Positions 1 through 59,937 of a stretch of DNA of 64,000 nt are shown here, in pieces (the first letter of the stretch is position 1; every line of letters starts with the position of its first letter). Under the pieces are notes generated by a model. That model was not told the DNA's origin, ran no database searches, and saw only the letters and a list, made by a program, of their open reading frames with translations. Origin of the DNA: Octopus sinensis (taxonomy: Eukaryota); the NCBI RefSeq assembly GCF_006345805.1, contig NC_042998.1, positions 81,096,001 to 81,160,000 on the forward strand. Direction: 5' to 3'. The position numbers were made by a program, and so were the translations under genes.

Positions 1-1078
1 CAAGCGCGTGCGTGCGCGAGCCTGCGAGTATGTGCGTAAGTATGTATGTGTGTGGATGTGTGAGTGTGTCTGTGTGTATGTCCGGGTGGCAGTGTGTCCG
101 ATGAATGTATGTGAGTATGTGTGTATGTATGTGTGTGCATAGATGTATGTCCGTGTGTGTGTATGTGTGTGAGTGTGTATGTATGTACGTGTGGGTGTGG
201 GGAAGTGTGTGTATGTGCATGTGTGTGCGCGTACATACAGGTGTGTGAGTGAGTGTGTGTGTGTGTATGTATGTGTGAGTGTGTATGTATGTGTGTGTAG
301 GATGCATGTATGTGTATGGGTGTATGTATGCGTGTGTGTATGTATGTATGTGTACGTGCGTGTGTGTGTGTGTATGCGCGTAGGTGTGCGCGTGTGCATG
401 CATGCATGCATGCATGTGCGTATGTGTGTGTGTGTGTGCATGTGTGTGGGTATATATGTATGTGCGTATATGTGTGTGTGTGTGCGTACATGTGTGTGTG
501 TGTATGCATGTGTGTGTATGTAGGTGTGTGGGCGTGTGTGTATAGGTGTATGTATGTAAGTATGTATGGGTGTGTCCGTGTATGTGTGTGTATGTATGTG
601 TGTGTATGTAGGTGTGTGGGCGTGTGTATATGTGTGTGTATGTAGGTGTGTGGGCGTGTGTATATAGGTGTATGTGTGTATGTCTGGGTGTGTCCGTGCA
701 TGTTTGTGTGTGTGTGTGTATGCATGTGTATGTAGGTGTGTGTGTACGTGTGTAATGTATGTGTGTATGCGTGCGTGTGTGTATGTAGGTGCGTGTGTAT
801 GTGTGTGGGAGTGTAGGTGTGTGTGTGCGTGTGCGTGTTTATCTTGGTGTGTGCGTATGTGAGTGTGAGTGTATGGGTGTTTGTCATGCATGTGTGTGCG
901 CGTGCAGGTGAGTGTGTGTGTAAGTATGTGTGTGTGTATGTTTGTGTGAGTGTGTATGTGTGTATGTCTGTGTGTATGTATGTGCGTATAGGAGTATGTG
1001 GGTATGTGTGTGTGTATGTATATGGGTGTATGTATGTATGTGTGTGTGTGTGCATGTGTATAAGTATATATATATATA
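1..1078. repeat. Degenerate (GT)n/(GTAT)n low-complexity tract
   Basis: Almost entirely GT, GTAT and GTGC units. The V/C/Y/M-rich ORFs here are artefacts of the repeat. Confidence 0.95.
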
Positions 1079-3200: not shown

Positions 3201-3844
3201 TTTCTTCAGATTTCCACAACGATCAATACTAGAAAACTCTTTTCAGTTGTTGAGTATCTTTGCTAATGTAACATTCGATTTTAAAAGCAATTCTCTTGAG
3301 CTTGTATCATGTAATCCTTCGACGTTGAATCATTTATATACATCTTTGAAGACTGTTGTACGCTTCTGTTTCCTTTCCTCCTCTTTCCCAACTCCCTCTC
3401 GCTCTCTCTCGCTTTGCTACCTCTCAATGTCGCTCGGCACACTCCTTTTTCCTTTACCTTTGTCCAGATATTATTAAATCCAAAAGTGCATACTTGTGTT
3501 AATAATAATGATTAATATTGATGATTCTCTTTCATGATCTTTCATTTTTTCTTCCTCTATCTACTTTATCCTCTCATGCAATAAGCTAGAATCAACATTG
3601 CTAGTAAGATTAATTATTTCTAATAATCTCCAACCTTTATACTTTCGCTCTAATCTATATGAGGTATTACATAAATATCAATCAAAAACTGTTTTTTCCG
3701 ATACAGTTCAATGTAATTTCTCGAAACCTACAGTATACATTACTTTTAGTTATTCTTTCATTCGTACATCCTTCAAATCCGTGATTATAGTTTATATAAT
3801 ATGCCTACCATGTAAGTTCACTGCCAATATTATATTTGCTCTAA

Positions 3845-4240
3845 GGCGGTGAGCTGGAAGAATCGTTAGCACGCCGGGCGAAATGCCTAGCGGTGTTTCG
3901 TCTGCCGCTACGTTGTGAGTTCAAATTCCGCCGAGGTCGACTTTGCCTTTCATCCTTTCGGGGTCGATTAAATAAGTACCAGTTGCATACTAGGGCGGAT
4001 ATAATCGACTTAATCCGTTTGTCTGTCCTTGTTTGTCCTCTCTGTGTTTAACCTCTTGTGGGTAGTAAAGAAATAGGTATTTCGTCTGTTTGTACGTTCT
4101 GAATTCAAATTCCACCTCGGTCGAATTTGCCATTTATCATTTCGAGGTCGATAAATTAAGCACCAGTTGCGTACTGAGGTCGATCTAATCGACTGGCCAC
4201 CTCCTCCAAAATTTCGGGCCTTGTACATAGAGTAAGTTAG
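3845..4240 (+). mobile_element. tRNA-derived SINE family B, dimeric form
   Basis: Head AGGCGGTGAGCTGG..GAGTTCAAATTCC (B-box-like). The core GTCGACTTTGCCTTTCATCCTTTCGGGGTCGAT is present twice. The same family recurs at ~30.2, 44.4, 54.1, 58.4 and 59.3 kb. Confidence 0.85.
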
Positions 4241-4793: not shown

Positions 4794-5705
4794 TATACAA
4801 AGTTTGATCAATAAGTATTCGGACTGTTGTAATAGTAACGGAACTAAAGCATACAGAGTAAAGCCGCTTGGTAACGATTAACCTTAAACGTTTTTGCACA
4901 TGTGCACTAAGTGTTAACTTTCTAGCCCATTTTCGCTGTTTACAGCAGTGCTTGGAAGGAACCTGTGTAGCGCTTGATCGTCGCTTTGAGATGACAAAGA
5001 ATGTTGTCATGGTGATACCTGCTCAGAGACCTGTGCAAAGTTTCAGAAAGTGTATGGAGAGAAGTGTATGAGCCACACACAAAGGTACGAATGGTTCAGA
5101 CATTTCCAAGATGGCAGAAAGTATGTCGATATTGACGGACGTACTGGGAAACCCGCAACCAGGAGAACTGAGAAAAACATCGCAGATGTACGTGCAGCTG
5201 TTAGGAGAAGTCGTCGAACCACCATCTGTAAGTTATCAAAGGATATGCAGATTAGTTACGGTTCAGTTCAGTCATTTATCACTGAAGATTACTCAGAAAC
5301 CAGGAGACACGCCAGGTTTCTGAGAAAACTGCTTTCAGCTGACCAAAAAAAACACTTGGGTTTCAGTTGATTGTGTCGAGATTGATTTCTGTTGATTGTG
5401 TCAAGAAGGATGAAAACTGTTTGAAAACTTTACGTAGGCCTCTGAGCAGGTATTGCCAAGCTTTTGGCAAAATTTGATGTAGATTTTATACTCAACATTC
5501 TCTATCATGATCAGTGTGACAATCACACGCTACCCACGTTCTTCCAAGCGCTGCTGTAAACAGCGGAAGTAAACTAGAACTTTAAACCTTAGTACGCATG
5601 CACAGCAGAGTTTAAGGTCAATCTGTGCCAAGCGGCTTCATTCTGCATGCTTTAGCATCATTACTATGGCAACAGACCTGGTATTTATTGATCAGACCAT
5701 CTATA
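4794..5705 (+). mobile_element. Internally deleted mariner element (N-terminal HTH half of transposase only)
   Basis: ~95-bp imperfect TIRs with TA ends. ORF 5050-5370 (YGEKCMSHTQRYEWFRHFQDGR..RTGKP..NIADVRAAV..ISYGSVQ) matches the mariner DNA-binding region; the catalytic domain is absent. Confidence 0.85.
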
Positions 5706-7372: not shown

Positions 7373-7412
<40 letters not shown>

Positions 7413-7490
7413 ATAAGTCCTTAAAAACGTTTTAGCCCGAAGGTCGCGGCCATGCTGGGGCACCACCGCTGTATATATATATATACACTG

Positions 7491-28972: not shown

Positions 28973-30243
28973 GAAGGAGAGAAGGAAAAACGTATGTGTC
29001 TATATGTAGGTATGAATGAACCAAAGGCTGTGTGTGTTTATGTGTGTGTCTTGATAATAAAATATTGCGTTAAAGTGCGATAACATTGATGGCGATATAC
29101 AGTAGTTTGTCTACCCTTCCCATACCATTGAGAATTCCGGCTCTACTCTATAGTGGTGGGTCATTGATTATTGGGGGATGTAGGCAATCGATTAAATCGA
29201 ACTCAAGAGTCGTACTTAATTTTGTCGATTGTGAAAATACGTGAGATAAAGGGTATCTCAATAGAATTTGAACTTAGATCATAAGGAGTAAGAATAATTA
29301 CTGCAAAGCTTTAGTGATTCTCCCAGTCCTCTGTGTTTTGTCACATATCTAATTATCATAACTAAAACGTTGATTATAAAACACAAACCGATAAATCAAT
29401 AGAGGCAAATTAAATCATATACAGCATATTCAATAAATAAAACTTTACAAATCATAAGATGTTATTCAAAGAGAAATTTTATTTATCACATATTATTCTA
29501 TACAAATCTAGTTATTCATAAACATCGATAAACCATCGATATTATTTTAATCAATGGGAAAACTAACGCATAATACGATTCCACCATTGAAAACAATTCA
29601 GAATTTTTCACTCGAATTCTCTTCGAATCTCCAATTACTTTATCAAGTAAATATATTTCAACTATCTTCTTTTTTCTTTAAATATGGATTAAATTTTAAA
29701 TTCTAAAGGAACTTTTCAGCGAACAATATCAATATATTTTTCAATGTAATGCAAGGTTAATTTTTCTCTCCTTTAAATATGTATAAGAAAACAATATATT
29801 TTGATACATTGTAAGCATTGTGAAGACTTCATAAAGTAGGAATATAATTATTCGGAAAATAGATGAAACAATAATCCATTTAAAACGTGATTGCGTTCAC
29901 AAATGTGCGTTTAATAAACATGCATTCATATTCGCTATGTAAATACAACCTATGGTTAAACAATAGGCCTATCTCCGCAAGGCAAACTGTAAAAAGCTAA
30001 ACTAGATAACCCTTTCTACTACAGGTACAAAGCCTGAAATTTTGAGGGCAGGGATAAGTCGATTACATCGACCCCAGAAAGTAACTGGTACTTATTTTAA
30101 TGAAACCGAAAAGCTGAAAGGCAAACTTGACCACGGAGGAATTTGAACTCAGAACAGTGACGGGCGATATACCGCTAAGCATTTTGTCCAGCGCGCTAAC
30201 TATTCTGCCAGCTGGCCGCCTTAACTGAACAAGATAATGTCTT

Positions 30244-30640
30244 TTCTACTCAAGGCAAAAAGCCCGAAATTTTTGAGAAGGGGGCCAGTCGATTAGATCG
30301 ACCCCAGGATGCGACTGGTACTTAATTTATCGACCCCGAAAGGATGAAAGGCAAAGTCGACTTCTGCAGAATTTGACTCAGAACGTAAAGACAAACGAAA
30401 TACCTATTTCTTTACTGCCCACAAGGGGCTACACAGAGGGAAAAAACAAGGACAGACAAACGGATTAAGTCGATTATATCGACCCCAGTGCGTAACTGGT
30501 ATTTATTTAATCGACCCCGAAAGGATGAAAGGCAAAGTTGACTTCGGTGGAATTTGAACTCAGAACGCATCGGCAGACGAAATATCGCTAAGCATTTCGC
30601 CCGGCGTGCTAACTTGTCTACCAGCTCGCCGCCTTAGGTA
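30244..30640 (-). mobile_element. Dimeric SINE B with 16-bp target-site duplication
   Basis: AACAAGATAATGTCTT at 30228-30243 and 30641-30656 flanks the element. A further SINE B fragment lies immediately to the left (~30005-30222). Confidence 0.85.
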
Positions 30641-32870: not shown

Positions 32871-33639
32871 TTTTCTTGTTAACTATAATATTGACTTTGC
32901 CATTCATTCTTTCGGAGGCAATAAAATAGGTATTAGTTGGCCACTGAGGTCAATGTAATCGACTTAACCCTTCCCCCCGACACTGCTGGTTTTTGTGCCA
33001 AAATTTGAACCATTATTGTGCTAGAGCATGTTAATTGAATTGACATGTATTTTTTCTTTTGGTGACTGCAAGTCTCCACAAATATCAAGAATCTTCCGTG
33101 GCATTCTTGCAGAATATAAGACGGATATTTCCTTCAGGTCGACAATGTGAGTTTCAATATAAATCACTTTGGGTGTTGTGCCAAGTGTACCAATTATTAC
33201 ACGAATAATTTTTTTGGTCTTCCACTGTCTCCTCAGCGCTCTGGTTCGATCCTAATATTTCTAATTCGTTTTCAGTTTCGTTGGTGTTGACTCGGCTATC
33301 ATAAGTATTTACAAAATCTATGATCTTACAGTGTTTGTTTATTTTGCCATTTCCGGTTTTCTTGCTTCATTAGTATAAATCCTTAAATCCTTAAAAATGT
33401 TTTAGCCCGAAGGCCGCGGACATGCTGGGGCACCACCACTGTATAAAAGAGTGTGTGAGACAGCGCCAGTGGTTTCAAGGCTGGAAGAATTCACAGAGAG
33501 TTCAGTTTAACGAAGTAACCACACGGCTAAAAACTCTCACAAGATCCTGTAATTCTCCTTTTCTATCACACCCTCTGGTTCGTGCTCTTACCACTTTTCT
33601 GCTGTCTTGAAGCCACACACACACCAAACATCCCAAAGA

Positions 33640-34190
33640 ACCCTTATGCCTACAGAATGATGTCTACGCTTATACTCCCTTTGTGCTAGTATACAGAATT
33701 TAATCAAAAGGTGGTTCATACTCTCGTCTCTTTTCCTCTAGTTTCTACATTTGTTGTCTGACTGAGTTTTGTCGATTGTTGCCTTTATCAGGTTTGTTCT
33801 AAGGGATTGTTTCTGAGCGACTATAATTACTGTTCTCCTATTTCAAGTTCCTGTCTGTCAACCAGGGGCAGATATCTTTATTTCCAACATTCTCGGTTTG
33901 TTACATGAATTGGTTAGGTAGTCCCGCTTCTTTCTATTTTCTTTTGCTCTGTTGTTCTTCCTTTTCTCTTAGAATTTTCCCACACTTTTTGGGATATTTG
34001 TGGCTGCTGATAGCATTCTTTCTTTACTCTGCTCAACATAATTTTTCGGAACCAGTGTCATTGCATTTACAGCGTCTTCTGCCACTTTCTTTTCTTGGTA
34101 TTGTTTTTAGGTCGGTATTGTTTTTAGTGTGGAATGCATTGTCAATTGTGAACAGCCTTTTAGTTCTCTTATCCAAGTTCTGTTGCTAGA
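33640..34190 (-). mobile_element. Decayed R4/Dong-type fragment (post-RT region)
   Basis: LDKRTKRLFT..FH.K..DL..IPRKESGR..PWLT..NLK.E matches DRKTRK.MT..HHPKSDIERLY..R.EGGR..WL..LKAETE in broken frames. A further short C-terminal-like piece lies at ~33050-33175. Confidence 0.55.
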
Positions 34191-35142: not shown

Positions 35143-36138
35143 ATGGAAGTATCCAAAGAGCATTTAAGGCACATAATGTACAAATATACATAATGTACAC
35201 ATAATGTACATAATGTACAAAAAGTGGAAACTCTGAAGCCGAAGCGACTCGAAATATATACTCAGTTTATGAGAAAGAATGCTTGAATGAAAGAACTTGC
35301 AGAAGATGGTTCGTAAAATTCAGAAGTGGAGATTTCAGCCTTGGAAATGAAAATTGAACAGAACGTCCAGTTGAGTTTGATGATAGGCTCCTTGAAGAAA
35401 ATCCTGCATTATCAGTTAAGAATTGGCAATAAAGTTTAGTTAAAATCAAACAACTGTTCATCGTCCTCTTCAACAACTTGGAAAGGTTCCTAAACTTGGA
35501 AAATGGGTGCCTTATGAATTGTCCGAAAGCAACCGCAAATCCCGAGTTAACATCTGCTGTTCTCTCCATTCTCGCGAACTCATTCCACCCTTTTCGTATA
35601 GATTTGTGACTGGTGACGAAAAATGGATTTTCTATCGAAATGTTAAACGTCGTAAACAGTGGCTCAACCACAATCGAGAAGGGAACTTCATGGGAAAAAA
35701 GGTTCTTCTCTCTATCTGGTGGGATTGTAAAGGAGTAATTCACTTTGAATTGTTACTACCTAATGCAGCAATCAGAGCGTTTGAACCAAGCTTTGAAGAA
35801 AAAACCCGCTTTAGTGAATCGAAAAGGAGTGATGTTTCATCAGGACAATGCGCGACCCAACACTGCAAATATCACATCACAAAAAATTGAAGAGCTTGGT
35901 TGGGAAAAAAATTCCTCATCTACCTTATTCTCTCGTCCTTGTTCCTTCAGACTACCATTTGTTCCATAGTTTACAGAATCAGCTGGGGGACATAATTTTT
36001 GCAAGCCAGGAGGTCGAAACTGATATTTCAGAGTTCTTCGTTTTGAAACCAAAAGAGTTTCATATGGATGGGATTAAAAAGCTTGTAAAAAGATGGAAGG
36101 ATGTCATTGATAATCAGGGCAAGTACATTGATGATTAA
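35143..36138 (+). pseudogene. Mariner (DD34D) transposase pseudogene
   Basis: MEVSKEHLRHIM.., WVPYEL, VTGDEKW, WWDCKGVIHFELL, HQDNARP and PYSLVLVPSDYHLF, ending DNQGKYIDD*. 34 residues between the last two D after correcting a frameshift; stops, frameshifts and deletions present. Confidence 0.9.
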
Positions 36139-36490: not shown

Positions 36491-36860
36491 AAAGCGGGTG
36501 ATTTATCCTTATCTTCGTTTGGGTAGACTCATTGGTCGGCCTGGAGTTTTTTTTCAGTGTATTTTATCAGAGAGTTTAGCGTAATGACGAAGCGAGTCAG
36601 CCTGGAAAATGCCCCTGCGTATTTTAACGTTACACTTTTATTCCTTTACTTGTTTCAGTCATTTGATTGCAACCATGCTGGAGCACCATCTTTAGTCAAA
36701 CAAATAGACCCAAGGACTTGTACTCTGTAAGCCTTATTCTATCGGTCTCTTTTGTCAAGCGATGGGGAGGGGACAAACATAGACACACAAATACAGCTTC
36801 CATATATACATACATACACACAGACAGACAAACAAACAGACACACTCACGCACACACACG

Positions 36861-36951
<91 letters not shown>

Positions 36952-36984
36952 TAGATGGAAACTTCCTCAGAAGATGAGCGATTG

Positions 36985-37290
36985 ATGTCATTACAATTCT
37001 TTTGAACCTTAGGTCTGCCTGAAATCCAATCAAAAATTTGCCGGTACTTTTCTTGATCATTTCCAGGACACCCATAATAACAAGGCTGGTTTTGGTTTTT
37101 TATTGCCATGTTCTAAAGATATCAATCCATGTATTTTGACAGTTTTTCAACTTATTTTACCACGATGTTTGTATTAGTAAGTATCGTCATATCAATTTAC
37201 CGACATGTCTTTTGTCTTAGAGTTTTGATGTCGATGTCAGCCCTGTTTTCATCTATTTGCCTTCTGTATGTAGCCCCTAACCGCATAGGA
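36985..37290 (-). mobile_element. Decayed R4/Dong-type RLE fragment
   Basis: [39 protein letters not shown] parallels RPDIVV..CFLIDVSV..EKLSKY..IVGALGMIKK. Confidence 0.65.
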
Positions 37291-37604: not shown

Positions 37605-37622
37605 ATTATTATTATTATTATT

Positions 37623-37797
37623 CTATGTTTGACTTTTTCTTTATATTTGTACAAGTTGGCTCCAAGTCTCACTCAGAGACCTCAAGAGACAACAAGCTGG
37701 AAGTTCGAGATGTTGTTATGCCTAGTATGCCATATATTTAGTTTTGTATTTAGTGTTGTACTAGTGAATGTCAAATACAAAAAACGAAATTTATGTT
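37623..37797 (-). mobile_element. Short non-coding insert between TAA arrays, probably the 3' UTR of another Dong-type family
   Basis: 175 bp flanked by TAA arrays. Family assignment is inferred from position and orientation only. Confidence 0.45.
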
Positions 37798-37821
37798 TTA
37801 TTATTATTATTATTATTATTA

Positions 37822-37891
<70 letters not shown>

Positions 37892-38447
37892 GAGTGAGAG
37901 AGCAGTGCATGCCATCAAAGTGACACTGGGGTAAAATATACGAAACCCAATATACCCATCATGACTACCCGTCTGATAAGGGTACACCAGGCACATGCAT
38001 CACAACCATATGTGCGCGACATGGTGATCTCATATTAAGATAAACAGCACATGACCTTGCAGGTGGGGCCCAGTTAGAATATTTTCTTCAGGTTGAGTAG
38101 CCCATCCCGCTCAAAAGGTCCCTGAATAAGGGTTGTTTAAGGATGTTGAAAGAACCACCCATGTTTCCAGAGGTGAATTATTCAAACCCCAAAGAATCCC
38201 TCTCAACACATGGCTATGATGCTCCCCCATTACTTCTGCTCGTGATCAGAGATGCACATATCGTCAGCCACTAAGGAACATGCTCAACTGGTTAAGGTCA
38301 AACAACTGACAAGCAAATCTGTGGTATTGAGCAGAATATTTCCTGTAGCCCATCTTTTATACCAAGACAAAACAATGTACATGATAACACTTCCAATCAG
38401 TTAAGATCAGAAGCCATGAGAGCCACTGCCTGGTACTGCACCAGGGC
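37892..38447 (-). mobile_element. Element X copy 1: ~556-bp non-coding element in (TAA)n
   Basis: No long ORF; TAA arrays on both sides; homologous copies at 42876-43431 and 43448-43590. Confidence 0.8.
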
Positions 38448-38487
<40 letters not shown>

Positions 38488-38541
38488 ATTATTATTATTA
38501 TTATTATTATCATCATTACTATTTTTATTATTATTATTATT

Positions 38542-41500
38542 CAGTAGTTTTATTTTTATTTTTATAGCGTGCTTTCACTTCACTACCGAGCGCAGCTCTG
38601 TGTGCCTTGGGTATGTGCTGTGATTTGTTGTGATGCCCTGATGGTTATTGTATGGAAAGTGTTCTGCGTAGGATGTGTGCAGTGCCTAGTAGTGCAATTT
38701 TCTGTATGTTATATGTGTTTGTAAGTCCTGGTGTTTTTGTTATGTATTTGTCTGAATATTTTTTTATCATGCCTAATGCACCTACTATGATAGGAATTGT
38801 TTCTGTTTTCAGATTCCACATTCTAGTTACCTCTATTTCCAGGTCTTTGTATTTTGAGAGTTTCTCCATTTCTTTTAGAGACACGTTGTCATCTGCCGGT
38901 ACTGATACATCAATTAGAAAGCATTTTTTTTCTTCATGGTCTCTGACAACTATATCTGGTCTGTTGGCCTTAATTTCTCTATCTGTGTGTATCGGCATAT
39001 CCCAGAGTATGGTTGCTTTCTCGTTTTCTGTGACCTTTTCTGGTGTGTGCCTATACCATCTTTTTTCTGTTGTTATTCCATAATGTTGGCATAGCTTCCA
39101 ATGTATGTAAGTTCCAACTCTGTCATGTCTGTGAATATATTCCTTCTTAGCCAGGACTGGGCAGCTAGAGATAATATGATTTATTGTTTCTTGTCCATCT
39201 CCACATATTCTGCAGTTACTTGTAATATTTCTTTTCATTACATGTTTTTGGTAATTTCTGGTGGGGAGGCTTTGGTCTTGTGCTGCAATTAAAAATCCCT
39301 CTGTTTCTGCTTTGAGTCCTGAGCTTCTCAACCATTGCTGGGATTTTTCTTTGTCTATTTCTTTTGCGTTTAGTTTAGTCCAGTATTTACCATGAAGGGG
39401 CTTTTCTTGCCATCGTTTTATCATGGTTCGTTGCTGTTCTATTTTTAGTTTGGATTTCATTTTTTTTATAGCTTTTGTTGTTTCTTCCTCTTCTTCTTCC
39501 TCTTCTTCTTCATGTTTATTAGGTGGTATGATTTCTTGTTTGTATTTGTCAGCTTCCTTAAATACTGAGAACAGTTTTTTGTTTTGCTCGTGTTTTGCCG
39601 CTATTTGGATCAGTTTTCCTTCCTTCTGAAGTAGATATTTTTGCAGTCCTATGGTGGTTATTTTATAGTAGTTTTCCAGCTGTATAAGGGCTCTACCACC
39701 TTCTATACGTTGTATATATAGTCTTTCTATGTCAGATTTTGGGTGATGCATCCTAGATCCTGTCATTATTTTTCTTGTTTTCCTGTCTATTTTGGTCAGT
39801 TCATTTCGTGTCCAGTTAAGGATATTGTAGCTGTAACTTATAACTGGGACAGCTAAAGTGTTGATACCTATTATCTTGTTTTTAGCATTGAGCTCTGTGT
39901 TTAGTATTGATCTAACTCGTCTATAATATTCTTTTTTTATTTTCTCTTTCATTTGTGTGTTTTGTGTCTTATCTAATTCATGGATTCCTAAGTATTTGTA
40001 AGTTTGGCTTTGGTCTAATTCTTTTATTTCATTTGCTTCATCTAGTGTGATGTTGTTACTCTTAACTAGTTTTCCTCTTTTCATGGTTACTTTGGCGCAT
40101 TTTTCTAATCCAAATTTCATATCTATTTCTTTGGTAAATCCATGAACTGTCTTTAATAGTGTTTCCAGCTGTTTGTCATTTGCAGCGTATAGTTTTAGGT
40201 CATCCATATATAAAAGGTGGCTGATCGTTTTGCCGTAACATTTATATCCGCATCCAGTTCTATTTAGCATATCAGATAGAGGTGACAGTGCCAAGCAGAA
40301 AAGGAGTGGAGAGAGCGTATCTCCCTGGAATATTCCTCTTCTAATGGGGATGTCTTTGGTTTTCATGAGTCCCTCTTTTGTTTGGAGGTGTAGGACTGTT
40401 TGCCATTTATTCATAGAGTGCTCTATGAATTTTATGATTGTTGGTGCTACTTTGTTAATGGCTAGTGTTTCGAGGATCCATATGTGGTGGATGCTATCAA
40501 ACGCCTTTTTGTAGTCAATCGAGGCCATACTGAGGCCTTTCTTCTTTCTGTGGCTGTCTTCAGTTATGGCTTTATTAATCATTAGTTGATCTTTACAGCC
40601 ATATGAGCCTTTGCGGCATCCTTTCTGCTCTTCTGGGAACAGTTTGTATTCGTCCAGGTGCTTGTTCAGCCTTTGTGATATCACTGCAGTAAATGCCTTG
40701 AACATAGTAGGGAGGCAGGTTATTGGTCTGTAGTTTTCTGGTTTTTCTGTTTCATTTGATTTGGGAATTAAGATGGTTTTCCCCTTCGTGAGCCATTCAG
40801 GCATTGTCTCTGGCTCTGCTAGTACGTTGTTAAAGTTTTCAGCCAGCTTTTTGTGCATTCCTGTTAGATATTTCAACCAGAAGTTGGGGATCTTGTCATG
40901 CCCAGGTGCCTTCCAGTTGCTTAGTCTTTGCAGTGCCTGGGTGACCTCTTCAGTTGTTATGGGGGTCCAAGTTTGTTCAGATGCCGAGTTTGTTATTTTG
41001 ATACTCCTTTTTTTTGGTGGTTCGTTCGCCGACCATATTTCTCCCCAGAATTCTTCCAATTCTTCTGCCGTTGGTGCTGCAGTGACTTCTATTTTATTTT
41101 TGCCCAGTTCTTGGTAGAACTTTTTGGGGTCGGAGTTGAACTTTTTGTTCTGTTCAAAGAAGCGTTGGCGTTTCTCGTACCGGCGGATTCTTTGAGCTTT
41201 GGCAAGGATATCTTGCTTCAGCTTTTCTTTTATCTCCGGCAAATCTTTTTCTGTGGTGTTATATTTGCGGAGCATTTTTGTTCTCTTTTTGTTGCTCAGT
41301 AGCGTTGCTTGTTTGCTGATTTCATTAAGAATCGACAGGTCTTTTCTAATTTTTTTAATTTTGTTTTGGATGTTATTTATCCACAGGGTTTGTTTGGGTG
41401 GTGGTACTCCTGTTTGGGCGGGTTTGGGTGAGTATCCAGCTTCTTTTGTGGCTGCAGTGGCTGCTGCGTATATCAAGTCATTTAGTTCAGTGATATCACT

Positions 41501-42001
41501 TTTTTTTGTTTCAGTGGCTAGTTCAGTGACGGCTAGGTTTATGTTGTTTATAATTGGTGTTGTTATTGCGTTTATTTTTATTCTTGGGAGGTATGTTCGG
41601 TGGTCCATTTTGAGCTCTGTGGTTTTTAGTTCTTTGATTATTTTATTTTTTATATTATCATAATCATTAGGCTCCCCTTCGTTGTTTACATCGTGTTTGT
41701 TGGGAATGTTGCGTTTGTCTTCGTGTTTTACAGTTTCAGTGTTTATATTATTGGGCATTGTTGTGTGGCTTCTATCTACATTTTCCTGGTGTATGTTTTC
41801 TTTTAGGTGTTCCATTTCTATTTCTGATATTTTTTTTGTGTTGAGAATGTATCTTTGTACGTTAGCTAATTTATTAGGGTTCATTGCTGTATCCAAGTCT
41901 AAATCTCTATTATTTTCCTTCCATATTTTATATGTATGTGTTGTTGTATTTTCATTTTTTGGGTAGAGTACTGCTGTGAAGTATGCGTGTAAGATAGAAA
42001 T

Positions 42002-42004
<3 letters not shown>
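38542..42004 (-). mobile_element. R4/Dong-clade non-LTR retrotransposon inserted in a (TAA)n microsatellite
   Basis: Single ORF with RT, CCHC knuckle and restriction-like endonuclease; ~100-bp 3' UTR ending ACTACTG(AAT)n; TAA arrays at 38450-38541 and 42003-42063. Confidence 0.92.
38645..41896 (-). CDS. Reverse transcriptase / CCHC / restriction-like endonuclease polyprotein (1083 aa in the track; frame is open a further 36 codons to 42004)
   Basis: Motifs KAPGHD, NYRPITCL, EEQKGCR, IDYKKAFDS, GIFQGDTLSPLLF, YMDD, FGLEKC, YKYLG, CRICGDGQETINHIISSC, RHD, RPDIVV..IDVS..EKLSKY. Confidence 0.95.
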   Translation of the reverse strand: MDTAMNPNKLANVQRYILNTKKISEIEMEHLKENIHQENVDRSHTTMPNNINTETVKHEDKRNIPNKHDVNNEGEPNDYDNIKNKIIKELKTTELKMDHRTYLPRIKINAITTPIINNINLAVTELATETKKSDITELNDLIYAAATAATKEAGYSPKPAQTGVPPPKQTLWINNIQNKIKKIRKDLSILNEISKQATLLSNKKRTKMLRKYNTTEKDLPEIKEKLKQDILAKAQRIRRYEKRQRFFEQNKKFNSDPKKFYQELGKNKIEVTAAPTAEELEEFWGEIWSANEPPKKRSIKITNSASEQTWTPITTEEVTQALQRLSNWKAPGHDKIPNFWLKYLTGMHKKLAENFNNVLAEPETMPEWLTKGKTILIPKSNETEKPENYRPITCLPTMFKAFTAVISQRLNKHLDEYKLFPEEQKGCRKGSYGCKDQLMINKAITEDSHRKKKGLSMASIDYKKAFDSIHHIWILETLAINKVAPTIIKFIEHSMNKWQTVLHLQTKEGLMKTKDIPIRRGIFQGDTLSPLLFCLALSPLSDMLNRTGCGYKCYGKTISHLLYMDDLKLYAANDKQLETLLKTVHGFTKEIDMKFGLEKCAKVTMKRGKLVKSNNITLDEANEIKELDQSQTYKYLGIHELDKTQNTQMKEKIKKEYYRRVRSILNTELNAKNKIIGINTLAVPVISYSYNILNWTRNELTKIDRKTRKIMTGSRMHHPKSDIERLYIQRIEGGRALIQLENYYKITTIGLQKYLLQKEGKLIQIAAKHEQNKKLFSVFKEADKYKQEIIPPNKHEEEEEEEEEETTKAIKKMKSKLKIEQQRTMIKRWQEKPLHGKYWTKLNAKEIDKEKSQQWLRSSGLKAETEGFLIAAQDQSLPTRNYQKHVMKRNITSNCRICGDGQETINHIISSCPVLAKKEYIHRHDRVGTYIHWKLCQHYGITTEKRWYRHTPEKVTENEKATILWDMPIHTDREIKANRPDIVVRDHEEKKCFLIDVSVPADDNVSLKEMEKLSKYKDLEIEVTRMWNLKTETIPIIVGALGMIKKYSDKYITKTPGLTNTYNIQKIALLGTAHILRRTLSIQ

Positions 42005-42063
<59 letters not shown>

Positions 42064-42818
42064 TACTTTTAATCTGCATGTCTGTTATCATCACTCGCCG
42101 ACAAACACCGGCATCCTAGGGTAAGTGAAGGATAAGAGATATTAAGATATGACTGAAAGCTCGGGATGGGTAAGTGGCAGGGGCAGTGGCGAAATATCTT
42201 CATGTACTACAACACAGGCATTTAAATTGATAGGGTTTTTCTAAGGATGTGGGCAGTAATTGTCAGCACAATTTTTTTGATTTCTCTGAGATATGGTTCT
42301 CCTGAGATATTATCTAGATGTTTCTGACATTTCTTTCTTATCATACCTTGGGAAGCCACAATAACAGGAACAGTTATCGCTTTAGGATGCCATATTTTTT
42401 TAATTTGAATTTCCAGGCCCTTATATTTACTTAATTTGTCAAATTCCTTTACAGATATATTTTTATCAGTGGGAACACTTACATCTATTAGTCTACAAAT
42501 ATTTTCTTCCTTGTCTTTAATGACTATGTCTGGTCGATTAGTCTGGATCGTTCTGTCGGTGTTGACTGGAAAAATCCCAGAGGATAGCGACATTTTTACC
42601 TTCAATGACTGGCTCAGGATGATGTTCATACCAGTAAGCCGGAGTGTTTATTTTGTAGTGTTTACATATTTTCCAATGTTAATACTGTCCTACCCTATCG
42701 TTTCGATTTTTGTAATCATTTGGTGTTAGCAAAAGGACATCCTGAGACGAGATGCTTTATTGTTTCTTCAAATTTATCGCAGAATCTGCATTTACGGTCA
42801 GAACCGTTATGAAGAACG
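42064..42818 (-). mobile_element. 5'-truncated R4/Dong-type element of a different family (CCHC + RLE + 3' UTR) in (TAA)n
   Basis: CRFCDKFEETIKHLVSGC..DRVGQY*HWKIC..NRPDIVIKDK..IDVSVP..KLSKY..AHILRKTLSI*; unique ~155-bp 3' UTR; TAA arrays on both sides. Confidence 0.88.
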
Positions 42819-42857
<39 letters not shown>

Positions 42858-42875
42858 ATTTTTATTATTATTATT

Positions 42876-42918
<43 letters not shown>

Positions 42919-43431
42919 CGCATGTCATCAAAGTGATACTGGGGTAAAATATACGAAGCCCAGTATACCCATTATGACTACCCGTCTGATAAGGGTGCAC
43001 CAGATACAAGCATCACAACTATATGTACGCGACATGGTGATCTCATAAACAGCGCATGACCTTGCAGGGCCCTGTTAGAATTTTCTTCACGTCGAGTAGC
43101 CTATTCGCTCAAACAAATAAGGTGTGTTTAATGATGTTGAAAAAAACACCCATGTTTCCAAAGGGGAATTACCCAAACCCCAATGAATTCTTTTCAATAC
43201 GTGGCTGTAATGTTCCCCAACTACTTGTGCTCGTGATCAGAGATGCACATATCGTCAGCCACTTAGGGTAATATACAACTTGTTAAGGTCAAGTAGCTGA
43301 CAAGTAAATCTGTGGGAGGGGGCAGAATATTTGCTGTAGCCCATCTTTTATACCAAGACAAAACAATGTACATGATAACACTTCCAATCAGTTAAGATCA
43401 GAAGCCATGAGAGCCACTGCCTGGTACTGCA
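42876..43431 (-). mobile_element. Element X copy 2 (diverged, with expanded GA tract at its 3' end)
   Basis: Colinear with copy 1; TAA on both sides. Confidence 0.8.
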
Positions 43432-43447
43432 TATTATTATTATTATT

Positions 43448-43590
43448 GAGTGAGAGAGCAGTGCATGCCATCAAAGTGACACTGGGGTAAAATATACGAA
43501 GCCCAGTATACCCATCATGACTACCCGTCTGATAAGGGTACACCAGGCACATGCATCACAACCATATGTGCGCGACATGGTGATCTCATA
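43448..43590 (-). mobile_element. Element X copy 3, 5'-truncated (143 bp)
   Basis: Two substitutions relative to the same part of copy 1; keeps the CTCTCTCACTC(AAT)n end. Confidence 0.85.
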
Positions 43591-43936
43591 ACACGATAAA
43601 CACGAAGACAAAGGCGACAACAACGAAGACGACGACGACAGCGATAACAACGATGACGGCAGCGGCGACGATGATGTCAGGATAAATGTGGGGACAGCAT
43701 GGCAACAACAAAGATCATGTGGGTGATTACGATGATGATGCTGATGATGCTGATGATGCTGATGATGGTGGTGGGGGTGGTGGTTTTGGTAGTGATGACG
43801 ATGATGACAACGACGACGACGCTGTAAACATGACCATGTAATTTACCTTGACAACATCGATGGGGATTACGGTATTTTCTTTAGTTAATCGAGTAGAGAT
43901 AAGAAAAAAAAGTGGGGGATTAGCAGGAAGGATTAG

Positions 43937-54240: not shown

Positions 54241-56830
54241 GGAACATTTGTCTAGCCAGCGGAGACCACACCCGTTCACTATCCAGGAGAATCCGAGGTG
54301 CCTCAACCTCAGCGCATGTCTGCGAACATTAACCAAGGCATCCCTAAACCTCCCTTTAAAGCGTTTCACAAGTGGCGACCTGCCCTTCCACTAAAAGCGA
54401 AAGAGCTGTCTCTCCAAACTGATCAACCACGAATCCGGACAGGTCACCACGGTCAGGCGGTAGGTAATGACCGATGCGATAAACACATTGGCCACCTGCG
54501 CCCTCTCCTTCAGGTATAGCCACCGCCAAGACCAGGTCTTGACTACTGCAGCCACCCTGCTCAATACCTCCGTCCAGTTCTTCTCTATCTGGAGGCCTGG
54601 TCCAAACCAAACTCCCAGCAATTTAACCGGTCTCTCCATCCAGTGCCCAACAACGCTGTCTGAAGGCATCTACTTGCCAACCCAGGTGCCGAGCTGCAAA
54701 CCGACAGACTCTTCCCGGTTAATCTTTGCTCCTGCGTCCTCTTCGTAAGCCTCAATAGTCTTACCCACTTCACGTAGGCGTGCTACTGAGGTTACGCTGA
54801 TAGTGATATCATCCGCGTAAGCTGTAACAAACTCCTCTGGACTAGGTTTTCTAGGGATGCCACTCAACCTTCGCAGTAGGGGCTCGAGAGCCATCACATA
54901 CAAAAGTGGTGAGAGCGGACATCCTTGACGAACCGAGCGTCTGATGCAGAACGGTTTCGAAAGGAAACCGTTCACCCGAACTATCGAGTCAATGTTGTGG
55001 TACAAAGCGATAAACCACCTGAGAAAGCCAAGGCCCAGGCCGAACCGCGCAAGCACAGTCGCCAGGTATCGATGGTCGACCCAATCAAAAGCTTTAGATT
55101 AGTCTAAATGCACCAATGCCCCACCTTTGCCAGAGTTATCACCAACCCTCTCTATGGTATAGCGAATAAGATGGAGATTATCTTGAATGGTTCTGCGTGG
55201 GATGGCATATGTCTGTGCCTCCCGACTATACCATTCGCGACACGCGCCAACATTTTTGCTAAAACCTTGGCCAAAATCTTCACTTCTGCGTTTAACAGAG
55301 TAATGGGTTTGAAATTATCTTAAACGTCCCCCTTGTCCAGGTACTTTCTGACCAAAGTCACTACTCCTCGGCGCACAGATCTGGGGATAAACCCATTCTG
55401 TTGCCAGTTCGCGTACACGTCAGCCAGTGGTTGTTCGAACAAGTCTGGCATACATTTATACAGCTCGTACAGAAGACCATTAAGTCCCGGCGACTTACCC
55501 TCTTTGCAGTCGGCCAAAGCCTCCATCACCTCCACAGGCGTGATTGGCCCTTCGTAAGACTCCGCATCCCACCGCGAGAGACACGGCATCCTGGCAAGAA
55601 AGTCCTCGAGGTCTCTCCCACCACCAGGATCGCCGTCGCCCCCGAACAGCTGGGCGAAGTACTCCCGAAAGGCCTCACACATTTTCTCGGGTTCGTTTAC
55701 CAAGACACTATTTTGATTCGTCAAAAACCGAATAGTGGAACTATTTCCTTGCCGAGCTCCCACCACTCGGGCCCATCCAGTGGCCTTGATTCCTTCACTT
55801 CCCATCGCACGTAACTTAGCTCTGGCAATACTTCCCATGTGTTGGGCTTCAAGATGCTGGCTTAACTCCATTCTGTTCACCCTTGCTTGGTCCGCATTAC
55901 CAGTCCTCCAGGCTTCTTCTAGTTCCTTAACTAGACCATCTCCTATTCTACGTCCCTTCTTAGCTAAACTTATGCTAAACCTAATAGACTTATATTTGAT
56001 GGCTCTTTTTAGGGCGTACCACCATTTGTTATTAATGATGGTACCTGTTAATCCCCTCTGTATTAACATCTTGATCCGCTTTATGTACTCCTCAATCGCC
56101 AAAAGGGACGTATTGTGTTTCCAGTAGCCAGATTCCCGACTATGCAACTTATCTATCGTCAGTTTACAGCTAACCTTCTTGTGGTCACTGTAACTGACTA
56201 GAAAAAACTGTGGACACTCGGCTATGGAATTATCTGTTTCTCTAATTAAAATCCTATCTAGATATGTTCTGGAGGACCCGTCACTATTTTATCACGTCCA
56301 CTGTGGAGTGTTCGGGTGTTCCAACCTATATGGATCTTCTAGCTGAAATTGACTTAGCAGATCCCATAAGCCTGGGTTACATTTTCTGTTCATGTTCGAG
56401 CCAACACAATCTATGTGTGCTTCACATATTGTGTTAAAGTCTCCTAGCAATACTAGCGAATGCGAGGTGGCTAGGAACTTGCCCAGGTCACGAAAATATT
56501 AACTTTACGGGCCCATAATGTTGGGTGCATAAATAGCGACTAGCCTGATTACCTTGCCACAACTGAATGTCAGGTCAAGAACGACCAACCTGCATTCTGG
56601 GTCAGAAAAAACAACTTTTTCTCGGCTACCCAGTTTCTTTTTAGTAGGACCAACACCAGATCCCCACCTCCCGCTCGACTCGGAGAAACGTATTTCTCGT
56701 AGTCGTTCAGGAGGGGGAGTAGATCTCTTGGCCTCTTCACCCGGGTTTCCGTTGCAACAATTACATCCCTATTTCTCGACCTGATGTCATTTAGGAAGCA
56801 CCCTTGCTTCCAACTCGACATCAGATCATG
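54241..56830 (-). pseudogene. ORF2 (APE endonuclease + RT) of the L1/Tx1-type element
   Basis: VATET, VAIYAP, LGDFN, LDRI, SDHK, GYWKHN, KSPGLNGL, PITLLN, KAFD.VDH, SVRQGCPLSPLLY, AYADD, KIN.EES; several stops and frameshifts. Confidence 0.9.
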
Positions 56831-59326: not shown

Positions 59327-59548
59327 TATTTCTTTACTGCCCACAAGGGGCTAAACGTAGAGGGGAGAAACAAGGACAGACAAACGGATTAAGTCGATTA
59401 CATCGACCCCAGTGTGCAACTCGTACTTAATTTATCGACCCCGAAAGGATGAAAGGCAAAGTCGAATTTGAACTCAGAACGTAACGGCAGACGAAATACG
59501 GCTACGCATTTCGCCCGGCGTGCTAACGTTTCTGCCAGCTCGCCGCCT
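59327..59548 (-). mobile_element. SINE B monomer
   Basis: Full head-core-tail; ATAAATATAT on both sides is a possible target-site duplication. Confidence 0.8.
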
Positions 59549-59937
59549 AATAAATATATGTGCATACTAAACTGTTCCATTTTACTAAGAGAAAACGATT
59601 CAACGCTATTTAAATCAGCCAACTCTATAATAGTGGATAATATGAAGAAAAAATCGCCTTAGGACACAAAGGTCTTTAAGTTGTAATATTACAAGTTAAT
59701 GATCAATATTATGTTCGAAATGTATTGTACACTCACCTGGCGAGTCTTTCACAATGCTATTAATTGCTGACTGCAATATGAAATAACATAAATGACATGT
59801 GCTAGAAATAATGTTTTAAATAGTGCCGAGCTACTACTTTCAATTAGAAGTCTTACGGTTACGAAAATAGGTAACATGAAATAAGTTTATTTATTCGCTG
59901 ACACAAACACACATGTGTCTGTCTGCCTGTATGTCTA

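Follow-up and report, generated by a model that had tools for sequence, protein, structure and literature searches.

Element X is a discrete, real mobile element of octopus genomes, about 556 bp long and non-coding, and its association with TAA microsatellites is strong but not absolute. It is classed as a discrete non-autonomous retroposon because the same 5' terminus is found in two species, the 3' junction is precise, the tail varies in length and 5'-truncated copies occur. On balance, we favor the reading that X is a non-autonomous non-LTR retroposon, old and headless, that gets into TAA repeats through target-primed reverse transcription (TPRT) with a Dong/R4-type protein. A Dong enzyme would most likely be the one that copies X, because X has an (AAT)n tail and occupies TAA microsatellite sites beside Dong-type LINEs.

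The window is the whole 64,000-nucleotide stretch of Octopus sinensis DNA that was analyzed. With positions 37892–38447 as the query, blastn identified exactly three copies of X in it, all on the minus strand, and a profile search of the window and two other cephalopod loci gave no further copies. X1 (37892–38447), delimited by blastn, inspection of the sequence and alignment, is a full-length copy of 556 bp that starts with GCCCTGGTGCAG and finishes with ...CACTGCTCTCTCACTC. X2 (42876–43431) is a near-full-length copy from a diverged subfamily, 85% identical to X1 and missing the first ~8 nt. Its blastn match to X1 covers 42902–43431, and a CT run carries the copy on to 42876; this run, an expanded form of the CT run at the 3' end of X, has grown to (CT)18 at 42876–42912, which reads as (GA)18 on the plus strand. 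X3 (43448–43610, where the match extends to 43602 and the copy ends at ~43610) is 96.8% identical to X1 and is 5'-truncated with an intact 3' end, because the match covers only the last ~155–165 nt of X. The 5' junction of X3 lies in a GAY-rich low-complexity region from which TAA is absent.

Read along the minus strand, the three X copies and two Dong-type LINEs form a head-to-tail array, X3-(AAT)5-X2-(AAT)19-Dong2-(AAT)20-Dong1-(AAT)38-X1-(AAT)31, in which each member is parted from the next by (AAT)n. The tracts, all on the minus strand, are (AAT)5 at 43432–43447, located by sequence and alignment, which is the tail of X3 and the 5' flank of X2; (AAT)19 with interruptions at 42819–42875, the tail of X2 and the 5' flank of Dong2; (AAT)20 at 42003–42063, the tail of Dong2 and the 5' flank of Dong1; (AAT)~38 at 38450–38565, between the 3' end of Dong1 and the 5' end of X1; and (AAT)31 at 37798–37891, the tail of X1, the last four being read directly from the sequence. 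The (AAT)~38 tract doubles as the Dong1 tail and the 5' flank of X1, and is degenerate on the Dong1 side and pure on the X1 side. As stated in the preliminary description, the three copies lie beside TAA, with (AAT)n 3' of all of them; X has the same orientation as the Dong elements, both of which are on the minus strand; and one copy, X3, is 5'-truncated with its 3' end kept. That X and Dong have the same orientation adds no independent evidence, because the polarity of the repeat imposes it. Directly 3' of the X1 tail is a stretch of ~175 bp of unique sequence (37605–37797, minus strand) that ends in (AAT)6 at 37605–37622. This segment has no match elsewhere in the sequences compared; the array may have in it a sixth member, 5'-truncated and TAA-tailed.

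Dong1 (38566–42002, minus strand), identified from Pfam matches, alignment to R2 proteins and its sequence, is a full-length Dong/R4-type LINE with one uninterrupted ORF of 1083 aa at 38645–41896. The ORF carries RVT_1 and zf-RVT domains (Pfam) and aligns with solved R2 proteins from the RT domain to the endonuclease (E=7e-35), and its C terminus, as read from the translation, includes a CCHC motif and an RPD...IDVSV...K motif of the kind that is typical of restriction-like endonucleases. An exact-sequence look-up of this ORF returned no record. Dong2 (42064–42818, minus strand), defined by amino acid comparison with Dong1, is a 5'-truncated, frame-shifted copy, a decayed C-terminal fragment with 44–53% amino acid identity to residues ~895–1082 of Dong1, and belongs to another Dong family; its truncated 5' end adjoins (AAT)n. 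For both copies the label Dong/R4-type refers to architecture and TAA location, not to phylogeny. The 3' end of Dong1 is ...AAAACTACTG(AAT)n, and the (AAT)n tail and (AAT)n flanks are common to both Dong copies, which are the only LINE copies in the window seen with such tails. The Dong UTRs seen here are ~80–160 nt long, and sensitive blastn detected no similarity between the 3' UTRs of Dong1 and Dong2. Another RLE-type LINE fragment is present at 36808–37262 (minus strand), with 33–41% amino acid identity to the Dong1 C terminus. On its 3' side it enters a (GT)n tract, which reads as an AC repeat along the plus strand, and this arrangement suggests a second microsatellite-associated LINE lineage beside the TAA array.

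Copies of X are also found outside the window. A composite query of X-derived peptides gave five protein matches, three of them named proteins of Octopus bimaculoides. From one of these, a PP2A B55 isoform (P0124), we reached 85.7 kb of O. bimaculoides chromosome CM046622.1 (L001), a stretch that holds a single full-length X at 70548–71101, within an intron and 89% identical to X1. Its 5' terminus, ATGCCCTGATGCAG, is the same as that of X1, ATGCCCTGGTGCAG, with the start ATGCCCTG... in common; at the 3' junction CTCTCTCACTC is followed by (AAT)11, and the upstream flank is (AAT)3. There is no Dong-like coding sequence within the 85 kb of L001. Because a full copy stands alone there, X is not the UTR of a longer coding element, the alternative that the preliminary description had singled out. 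A full HMMER scan with the X-derived protein P0121 identified 17 more X-derived ORFs, and at least 14 distinct "uncharacterized proteins" of O. bimaculoides are translations of X; the X family therefore has many copies. Diverged X-like copies that can be aligned over their whole length are present in short Logan contigs from several sequencing runs. The family is old, because these whole-length copies occur behind protein matches only 44–53% identical to P0121. No X was found in L002 (98.6 kb, GCA_054771915.1), whose alignment is confined to exons, and no empty, pre-insertion site was recovered from this exon-only comparison; a metagenome scan with a conserved 32-mer of X had no matches.

The X-derived proteins are P0121, P0123, P0124, P0125, P0253–P0256, P0260–P0262, P0264, P0265 and P0269–P0273. 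Fragments of X are translated in either orientation in O. bimaculoides gene models, including those of the PP2A B55 isoform and a cGMP-dependent protein kinase. In P0124 (L001 70946–71160), the 3' half of X and its (AAT)11 tail, read as poly-Asn, continue directly into a genuine exon; this fusion looks like intron retention or an annotation artifact. In L003 (1010–1105, minus strand), a partial duplicate of 65–80 nt from the 5' region of X, preceded by (AAT)5(AAC)3, lies directly upstream of a full X-like 5' end. In L008, Logan contig ERR12921341, a diverged X-like copy at 293–807 (minus strand) is followed after 1–2 nt by a full-length 5S rRNA-like sequence (173–291, minus strand; Rfam 55 bits) that replaces the (AAT)n tail. 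Possible origins of this junction are template switching that produced a chimera, a SINE derived from 5S that inserted in the tail, and integration immediately upstream of a 5S gene.

X1, X2, X3 and the L001 copy, the four close copies, have one and the same 3' junction, CTCTCTCACTC|(AAT)n, and the tail that follows it varies from 5 to 31 units. A TAA-type repeat in the polarity of the tail is also present at the 5' end in 7 of ~12 readable junctions. It was seen in X1, X2, the L001 copy (as (AAT)3 only), P0121, P0262, L003 and the L011–L013 locus; it is absent from X3, L006, L008 and the copies behind P0253 and P0256, and L014 is ambiguous. Some copies are known only as proteins: in P0121 the X 5' terminus is followed by seven Ile codons, corresponding to (ATT)7 on the antisense strand; P0262 represents a copy truncated at ~95 nt from its 5' end, where the break carries poly-Ile; and P0123 records a tail of at least five units. 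For P0262 and P0256, look-ups yielded no DNA. Among the diverged copies, L003 has (AAT)5 upstream of the partial 5' duplication, the L011–L013 locus is bordered on each side by TAA-like repeats, and the AAT tail of L004 has decayed.

In the octopus DNA analyzed, the chance of an (AAT)≥3 run just upstream of a random position is 0.0015. This baseline understates the background association, because the heads of an unrelated octopus SINE are also near TAA runs (5/16, with 1/16 in the polarity of X). The enrichment for X is still large, in a sample that is too small to give a rate and comprises four close DNA copies, two of whose 5' junctions are in one array. The SINE used for comparison is abundant, with a 5' head AAGGCGGCGAGCTGGCAGAAACGTTAGCACGCCGGGC (AAGGCGGCGAGCTGGCAGAA...) and a 3' end ...GTAAAGAAATA. 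It is located in the window at 3842–4070 (plus strand), 30203–30223, 30616–30636 and 59330–59550 (minus strand) and at several sites in L001; the five heads with a TAA-type microsatellite have it within 10 bp and mostly in the polarity opposite to that of X. A candidate second (AAT)n-tailed family ending in ...TTCTGCCAGCTCACCGCCTTA was rejected, since this motif is the reverse complement of the SINE 5' head and has no AAT tail.

X has no coding capacity, as the preliminary description had noted: the longest ORF within it is 50 aa, and a blastx comparison with 121 Dong-like proteins, which would expose a Dong coding remnant, gave nothing below E=0.4. The further statement that X has no recognizable tRNA head also holds. 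ARAGORN found no tRNA in X, a 5S or 7SL head is likewise not recognizable, and Rfam gave no match at E≤1 to X with its flanks or to the 5' 163 nt alone and, in a scan of the whole window, no meaningful match on X. An A-box-like motif, TGGTATAAAAG, is present at nt 86, but the B box is missing, so that there is no A/B box pair, again in agreement with the earlier account. The sense strand has T4–T7 runs at ~nt 78, 290–334 and 514, the first of which is retained in most diverged copies. These internal runs argue against transcription of X by Pol III, which they would stop, and X is probably not a Pol III product; a promoter was not found. Two other candidates were discarded. An HDV-like ribozyme at the 5' end is contradicted both by Rfam, which finds no ribozyme family in the 5' 163 nt at E≤10, and by the spacing of the arms of the hairpin (P1), which at 5 nt are too close for an HDV fold; 5S-like motifs noticed in X have no support from the Rfam 5S model.

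X lacks terminal inverted repeats, LTRs and, as read from the sequence, the TC...CTRR ends of Helitrons; on the plus strand its ends are GAGTGAG...GGGCAT. The precise 3' end with a variable tail, the 5'-truncated copies and the absence of terminal inverted repeats and LTRs are the features of a TPRT retroposon. In sensitive blastn comparisons X showed no similarity to the Dong1 5' UTR, the Dong1 3' UTR or the Dong2 3' UTR, or to the rest of the window, and the Dong UTRs had no matches in any of the loci. The earlier statement that the 3' end of X differs from the 3' UTRs of the Dong copies present is thus upheld.

The last ~145 nt are the best-conserved part of X in every pairing (87–97% identity), and such conservation is as expected of a region that the reverse transcriptase would have to recognize. 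Between X1 and X2 the first 96 nt (38352–38447 and 43336–43431) are also 99% identical, and the central 300 nt ~82%. This contrast is not seen for the O. bimaculoides copy, and it points to a mosaic template, or to gene conversion between neighbors separated by 5 kb, rather than to constraint. The fold predicted for the whole of X is somewhat more stable than those of shuffled sequences (z = -3.8). In structures built from the close copies, the 3' domain is free of compensatory changes and the 5' region has a single one, and RNAalifold of nine diverged copies retained almost no structure (-5 kcal/mol), with covariation support absent. A 10-bp hairpin at nt ~35–60 (GCTTCTGATC...GATTGGAAGT) is retained in most copies, mainly through wobble changes. 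Two other hairpins had been described for X, and neither is supported as a conserved structure. The CCTGGT/ACCAGG hairpin at the 5' end is intact in X1 but only there, since X2 is without the 5' arm and the O. bimaculoides copy is mismatched; the CAGTG/CACTG stem said to close a hairpin at the 3' end is not part of the predicted fold and has no covariation across the nine diverged copies.

In the mechanism that we propose, the X RNA would end in ...CUCUCUCACUC(AAU)n. A TAA microsatellite would be nicked by a Dong/R4-type protein with a restriction-like endonuclease, acting in trans, and the (AAU)n tail would pair with the nicked (TTA)n strand, at which the X RNA would be copied by target-primed reverse transcription. 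New copies would thus land within TAA repeats with a fixed orientation and a fresh (AAT)n tail. The fresh tail would be the next target, and head-to-tail arrays such as X3-X2-Dong2-Dong1-X1 would result. We infer the RNA intermediate, the role of Dong as enzyme donor and recognition mainly through the tail and the conserved 3' domain; judged from the (AAT)n tail, target, orientation and co-location that X and Dong have in common, the Dong partnership is the most likely one. The suggestion in the preliminary description that X is a non-autonomous, site-specific partner of an R4/Dong-type element is therefore retained in part. X is a retroposon with defined ends and an association with TAA; its 3' end, however, has no sequence in common with either Dong 3' UTR, and this counts against the partnership. 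Since the 3' UTRs of Dong1 and Dong2 are themselves dissimilar, tail-driven recognition is plausible, and an unsampled parent or partner family is equally possible.

Four other explanations of X were weighed. X might be an ordinary dispersed retroposon that is not site-specific, has its own (AAT)n tail and is moved by some other LINE (RTE, CR1 or another), its association with TAA being due to the tail, a preference for AT-rich targets and microsatellite growth. The absence of 5' TAA from X3 and several diverged copies, the mere (AAT)3 upstream of the L001 copy, the TAA runs beside 5 of 16 heads of the unrelated SINE and the lack of X 3' sequence in common with Dong all agree with this explanation. 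We nevertheless regard it as unlikely, given that 7 of ~12 readable 5' junctions are TAA-type in the polarity of the tail, compared with 0.15% of random positions and 1 of 16 SINE heads, and that the only LINEs seen with (AAT)n tails in the window are the Dong copies, the other RLE fragment having (GT)n. An internally deleted copy of an unsampled Dong family, of the type of the SIDEs of R2, would have kept the UTRs of its parent and be recognized through a specific 3' UTR. Such parents are plausible because there are at least two Dong families in the array and five young families in O. vulgaris (PMC13282606), and the defined termini, the conserved 3' domain and the match of tail and target to Dong are what a derivative of this type would have. 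X is, however, unlike the Dong1 5' and 3' UTRs and the Dong2 3' UTR, contains no coding remnant and, at ~550 nt, is far longer than the Dong UTRs seen here (~80–160 nt); the X-like copies are old and widely diverged, with no ORF-bearing relative among the matches. An origin of this type consequently seems improbable to us.

It is very unlikely that X is a classical Pol III SINE whose tRNA-, 5S- or 7SL-derived head has decayed past recognition. The missing B box, the blank ARAGORN and Rfam results, even on the 163 nt alone, and the sense T4–T7 runs, which would stop Pol III and of which that at nt ~78 is kept in most diverged copies, outweigh the A-box-like TGGTATAAAAG at nt 86, the conserved 10-bp hairpin at nt 35–60 and the wealth of SINEs in octopus genomes, many of which are unclassified (PMC13282606). 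The explanation to which we give the least credence, and which is largely refuted, is that X is not an independent element at all but the 3' or 5' UTR of a coding element, a Helitron or MITE, or the unit of a tandem repeat. Dong1 does have X1 directly downstream, X3 and X2 form a tandem pair, and there is a Helitron-like hairpin at the antisense 3' end. X1 nonetheless has its 5' terminus in common with the O. bimaculoides copy, which has no LINE upstream and no Dong within the 85 kb of L001; terminal inverted repeats and TC...CTRR ends are absent, and the solitary L001 copy excludes a satellite.

The old, TAA-entering retroposon that we favor can be compared with several known systems. For the Dong elements of Bombyx, Anopheles and the snail Biomphalaria, the target is TAA repeats (PMC3812793). 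Among the LINE groups of O. vulgaris, Dong-R4 has the most recently active insertions, with five families and 1129 young insertions (PMC13282606), and a full-length Dong consensus has been noted in O. bimaculoides (PMC9115989). Like Dong elements of the R4 clade (Bombyx mori Dong, DongAg and DongBg), X has a probable TAA target, an (AAT)n tail, a fixed orientation and 5' truncation, and in the window it is interleaved with two Dong copies. Unlike them, it encodes nothing and has no unique sequence in common with the Dong copies present, so that it can be at most a passenger; the RT ORF, C-terminal CCHC motif and restriction-like endonuclease of an autonomous R4/Dong element are present in Dong1 and absent from X.

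SIDEs are said to have been described by Eickbush and Eickbush in 2012 as short, internally deleted, non-autonomous derivatives of R2, and they retain the 5' ribozyme and the 3' UTR of the parent. X resembles them as a non-coding candidate passenger of an RLE LINE that would insert at the LINE's own target, but it has no end in common with any LINE seen here and no match to an HDV-like ribozyme in Rfam. Neither end is colinear with Dong1 or Dong2 as the ends of a SIDE would be with those of an autonomous parent, and, with no parent seen to have either end and no coding remnant left, the SIDE comparison made in the preliminary description is unsupported. Some SINEs, such as those of the eel UnaSINE/UnaL2 type, have only a microsatellite tail, or a tail and a stem-loop, in common with the partner LINE. 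X is similarly short and non-coding, with a LINE-like simple-repeat tail and a conserved 3' domain before it; it differs from them in having no Pol III-derived head, in its internal T-runs and in its association with a specific target. Of the 3' region that SINEs have in common with a LINE, X has only the (AAT)n tail in common with Dong1 and Dong2, and the tRNA, 5S, 7SL or snRNA head and internal Pol III promoter of a classical SINE are missing. X works like a SINE or a SIDE and lacks the defining feature of each: it has no Pol III head, as a classical SINE would, and, unlike a SIDE, it has no parent with its ends among the LINEs seen here and no ribozyme.

Octopus genomes are about two-thirds repeats, and 893 SINE families of O. 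vulgaris are unclassified (PMC13282606). The host of these "unclassified SINE" and "unknown" families is that of X (PMC13282606), and automated octopus repeat libraries probably already contain X as a consensus without a name. In the literature searched, no family is described as TAA-specific and non-autonomous or as associated with Dong. X could be the first described non-autonomous partner of a microsatellite-specific RLE LINE, a headless non-Pol III RNA with only the (AAU)n tail in common with Dong, although we consider this doubtful. If it were true, Dong-type reverse transcriptases would accept templates mainly through pairing of tail and target, and one enzyme lineage would have spread unrelated non-coding RNAs through octopod TAA repeats over tens of millions of years. 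A defined X family that moved with Dong into TAA repeats would offer a natural substrate for the question of how RLE LINEs choose their RNA templates, by tail or by 3' UTR structure. It would account for some of the growth and chaining seen in TAA microsatellites, and it would help to clean the annotation of O. bimaculoides, in which X is translated into gene models. X changes no general principle of retrotransposition.

Several other features of the window were recorded. A match to Vault RNA (RF00006) at 33449–33540 (minus strand), with 37 bits against a gathering score of 34, ends in TTTT, adjoins a decayed RLE-LINE ORF fragment (33540–33827) and is followed by a repeat also found at 7400–7475. 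No second copy of the vault-like part is present in the window, in L001 or in L002; the match could be a real vault RNA gene or a retro-copy. A separate, GC-richer LINE is located at 54649–56147 (minus strand), with an RVT_1 fragment at 54670–55056 beside an ORF of 275 aa. Fragments of mariner-like transposase ORFs are present on the plus strand at 5050–5370 and 35507–36138.
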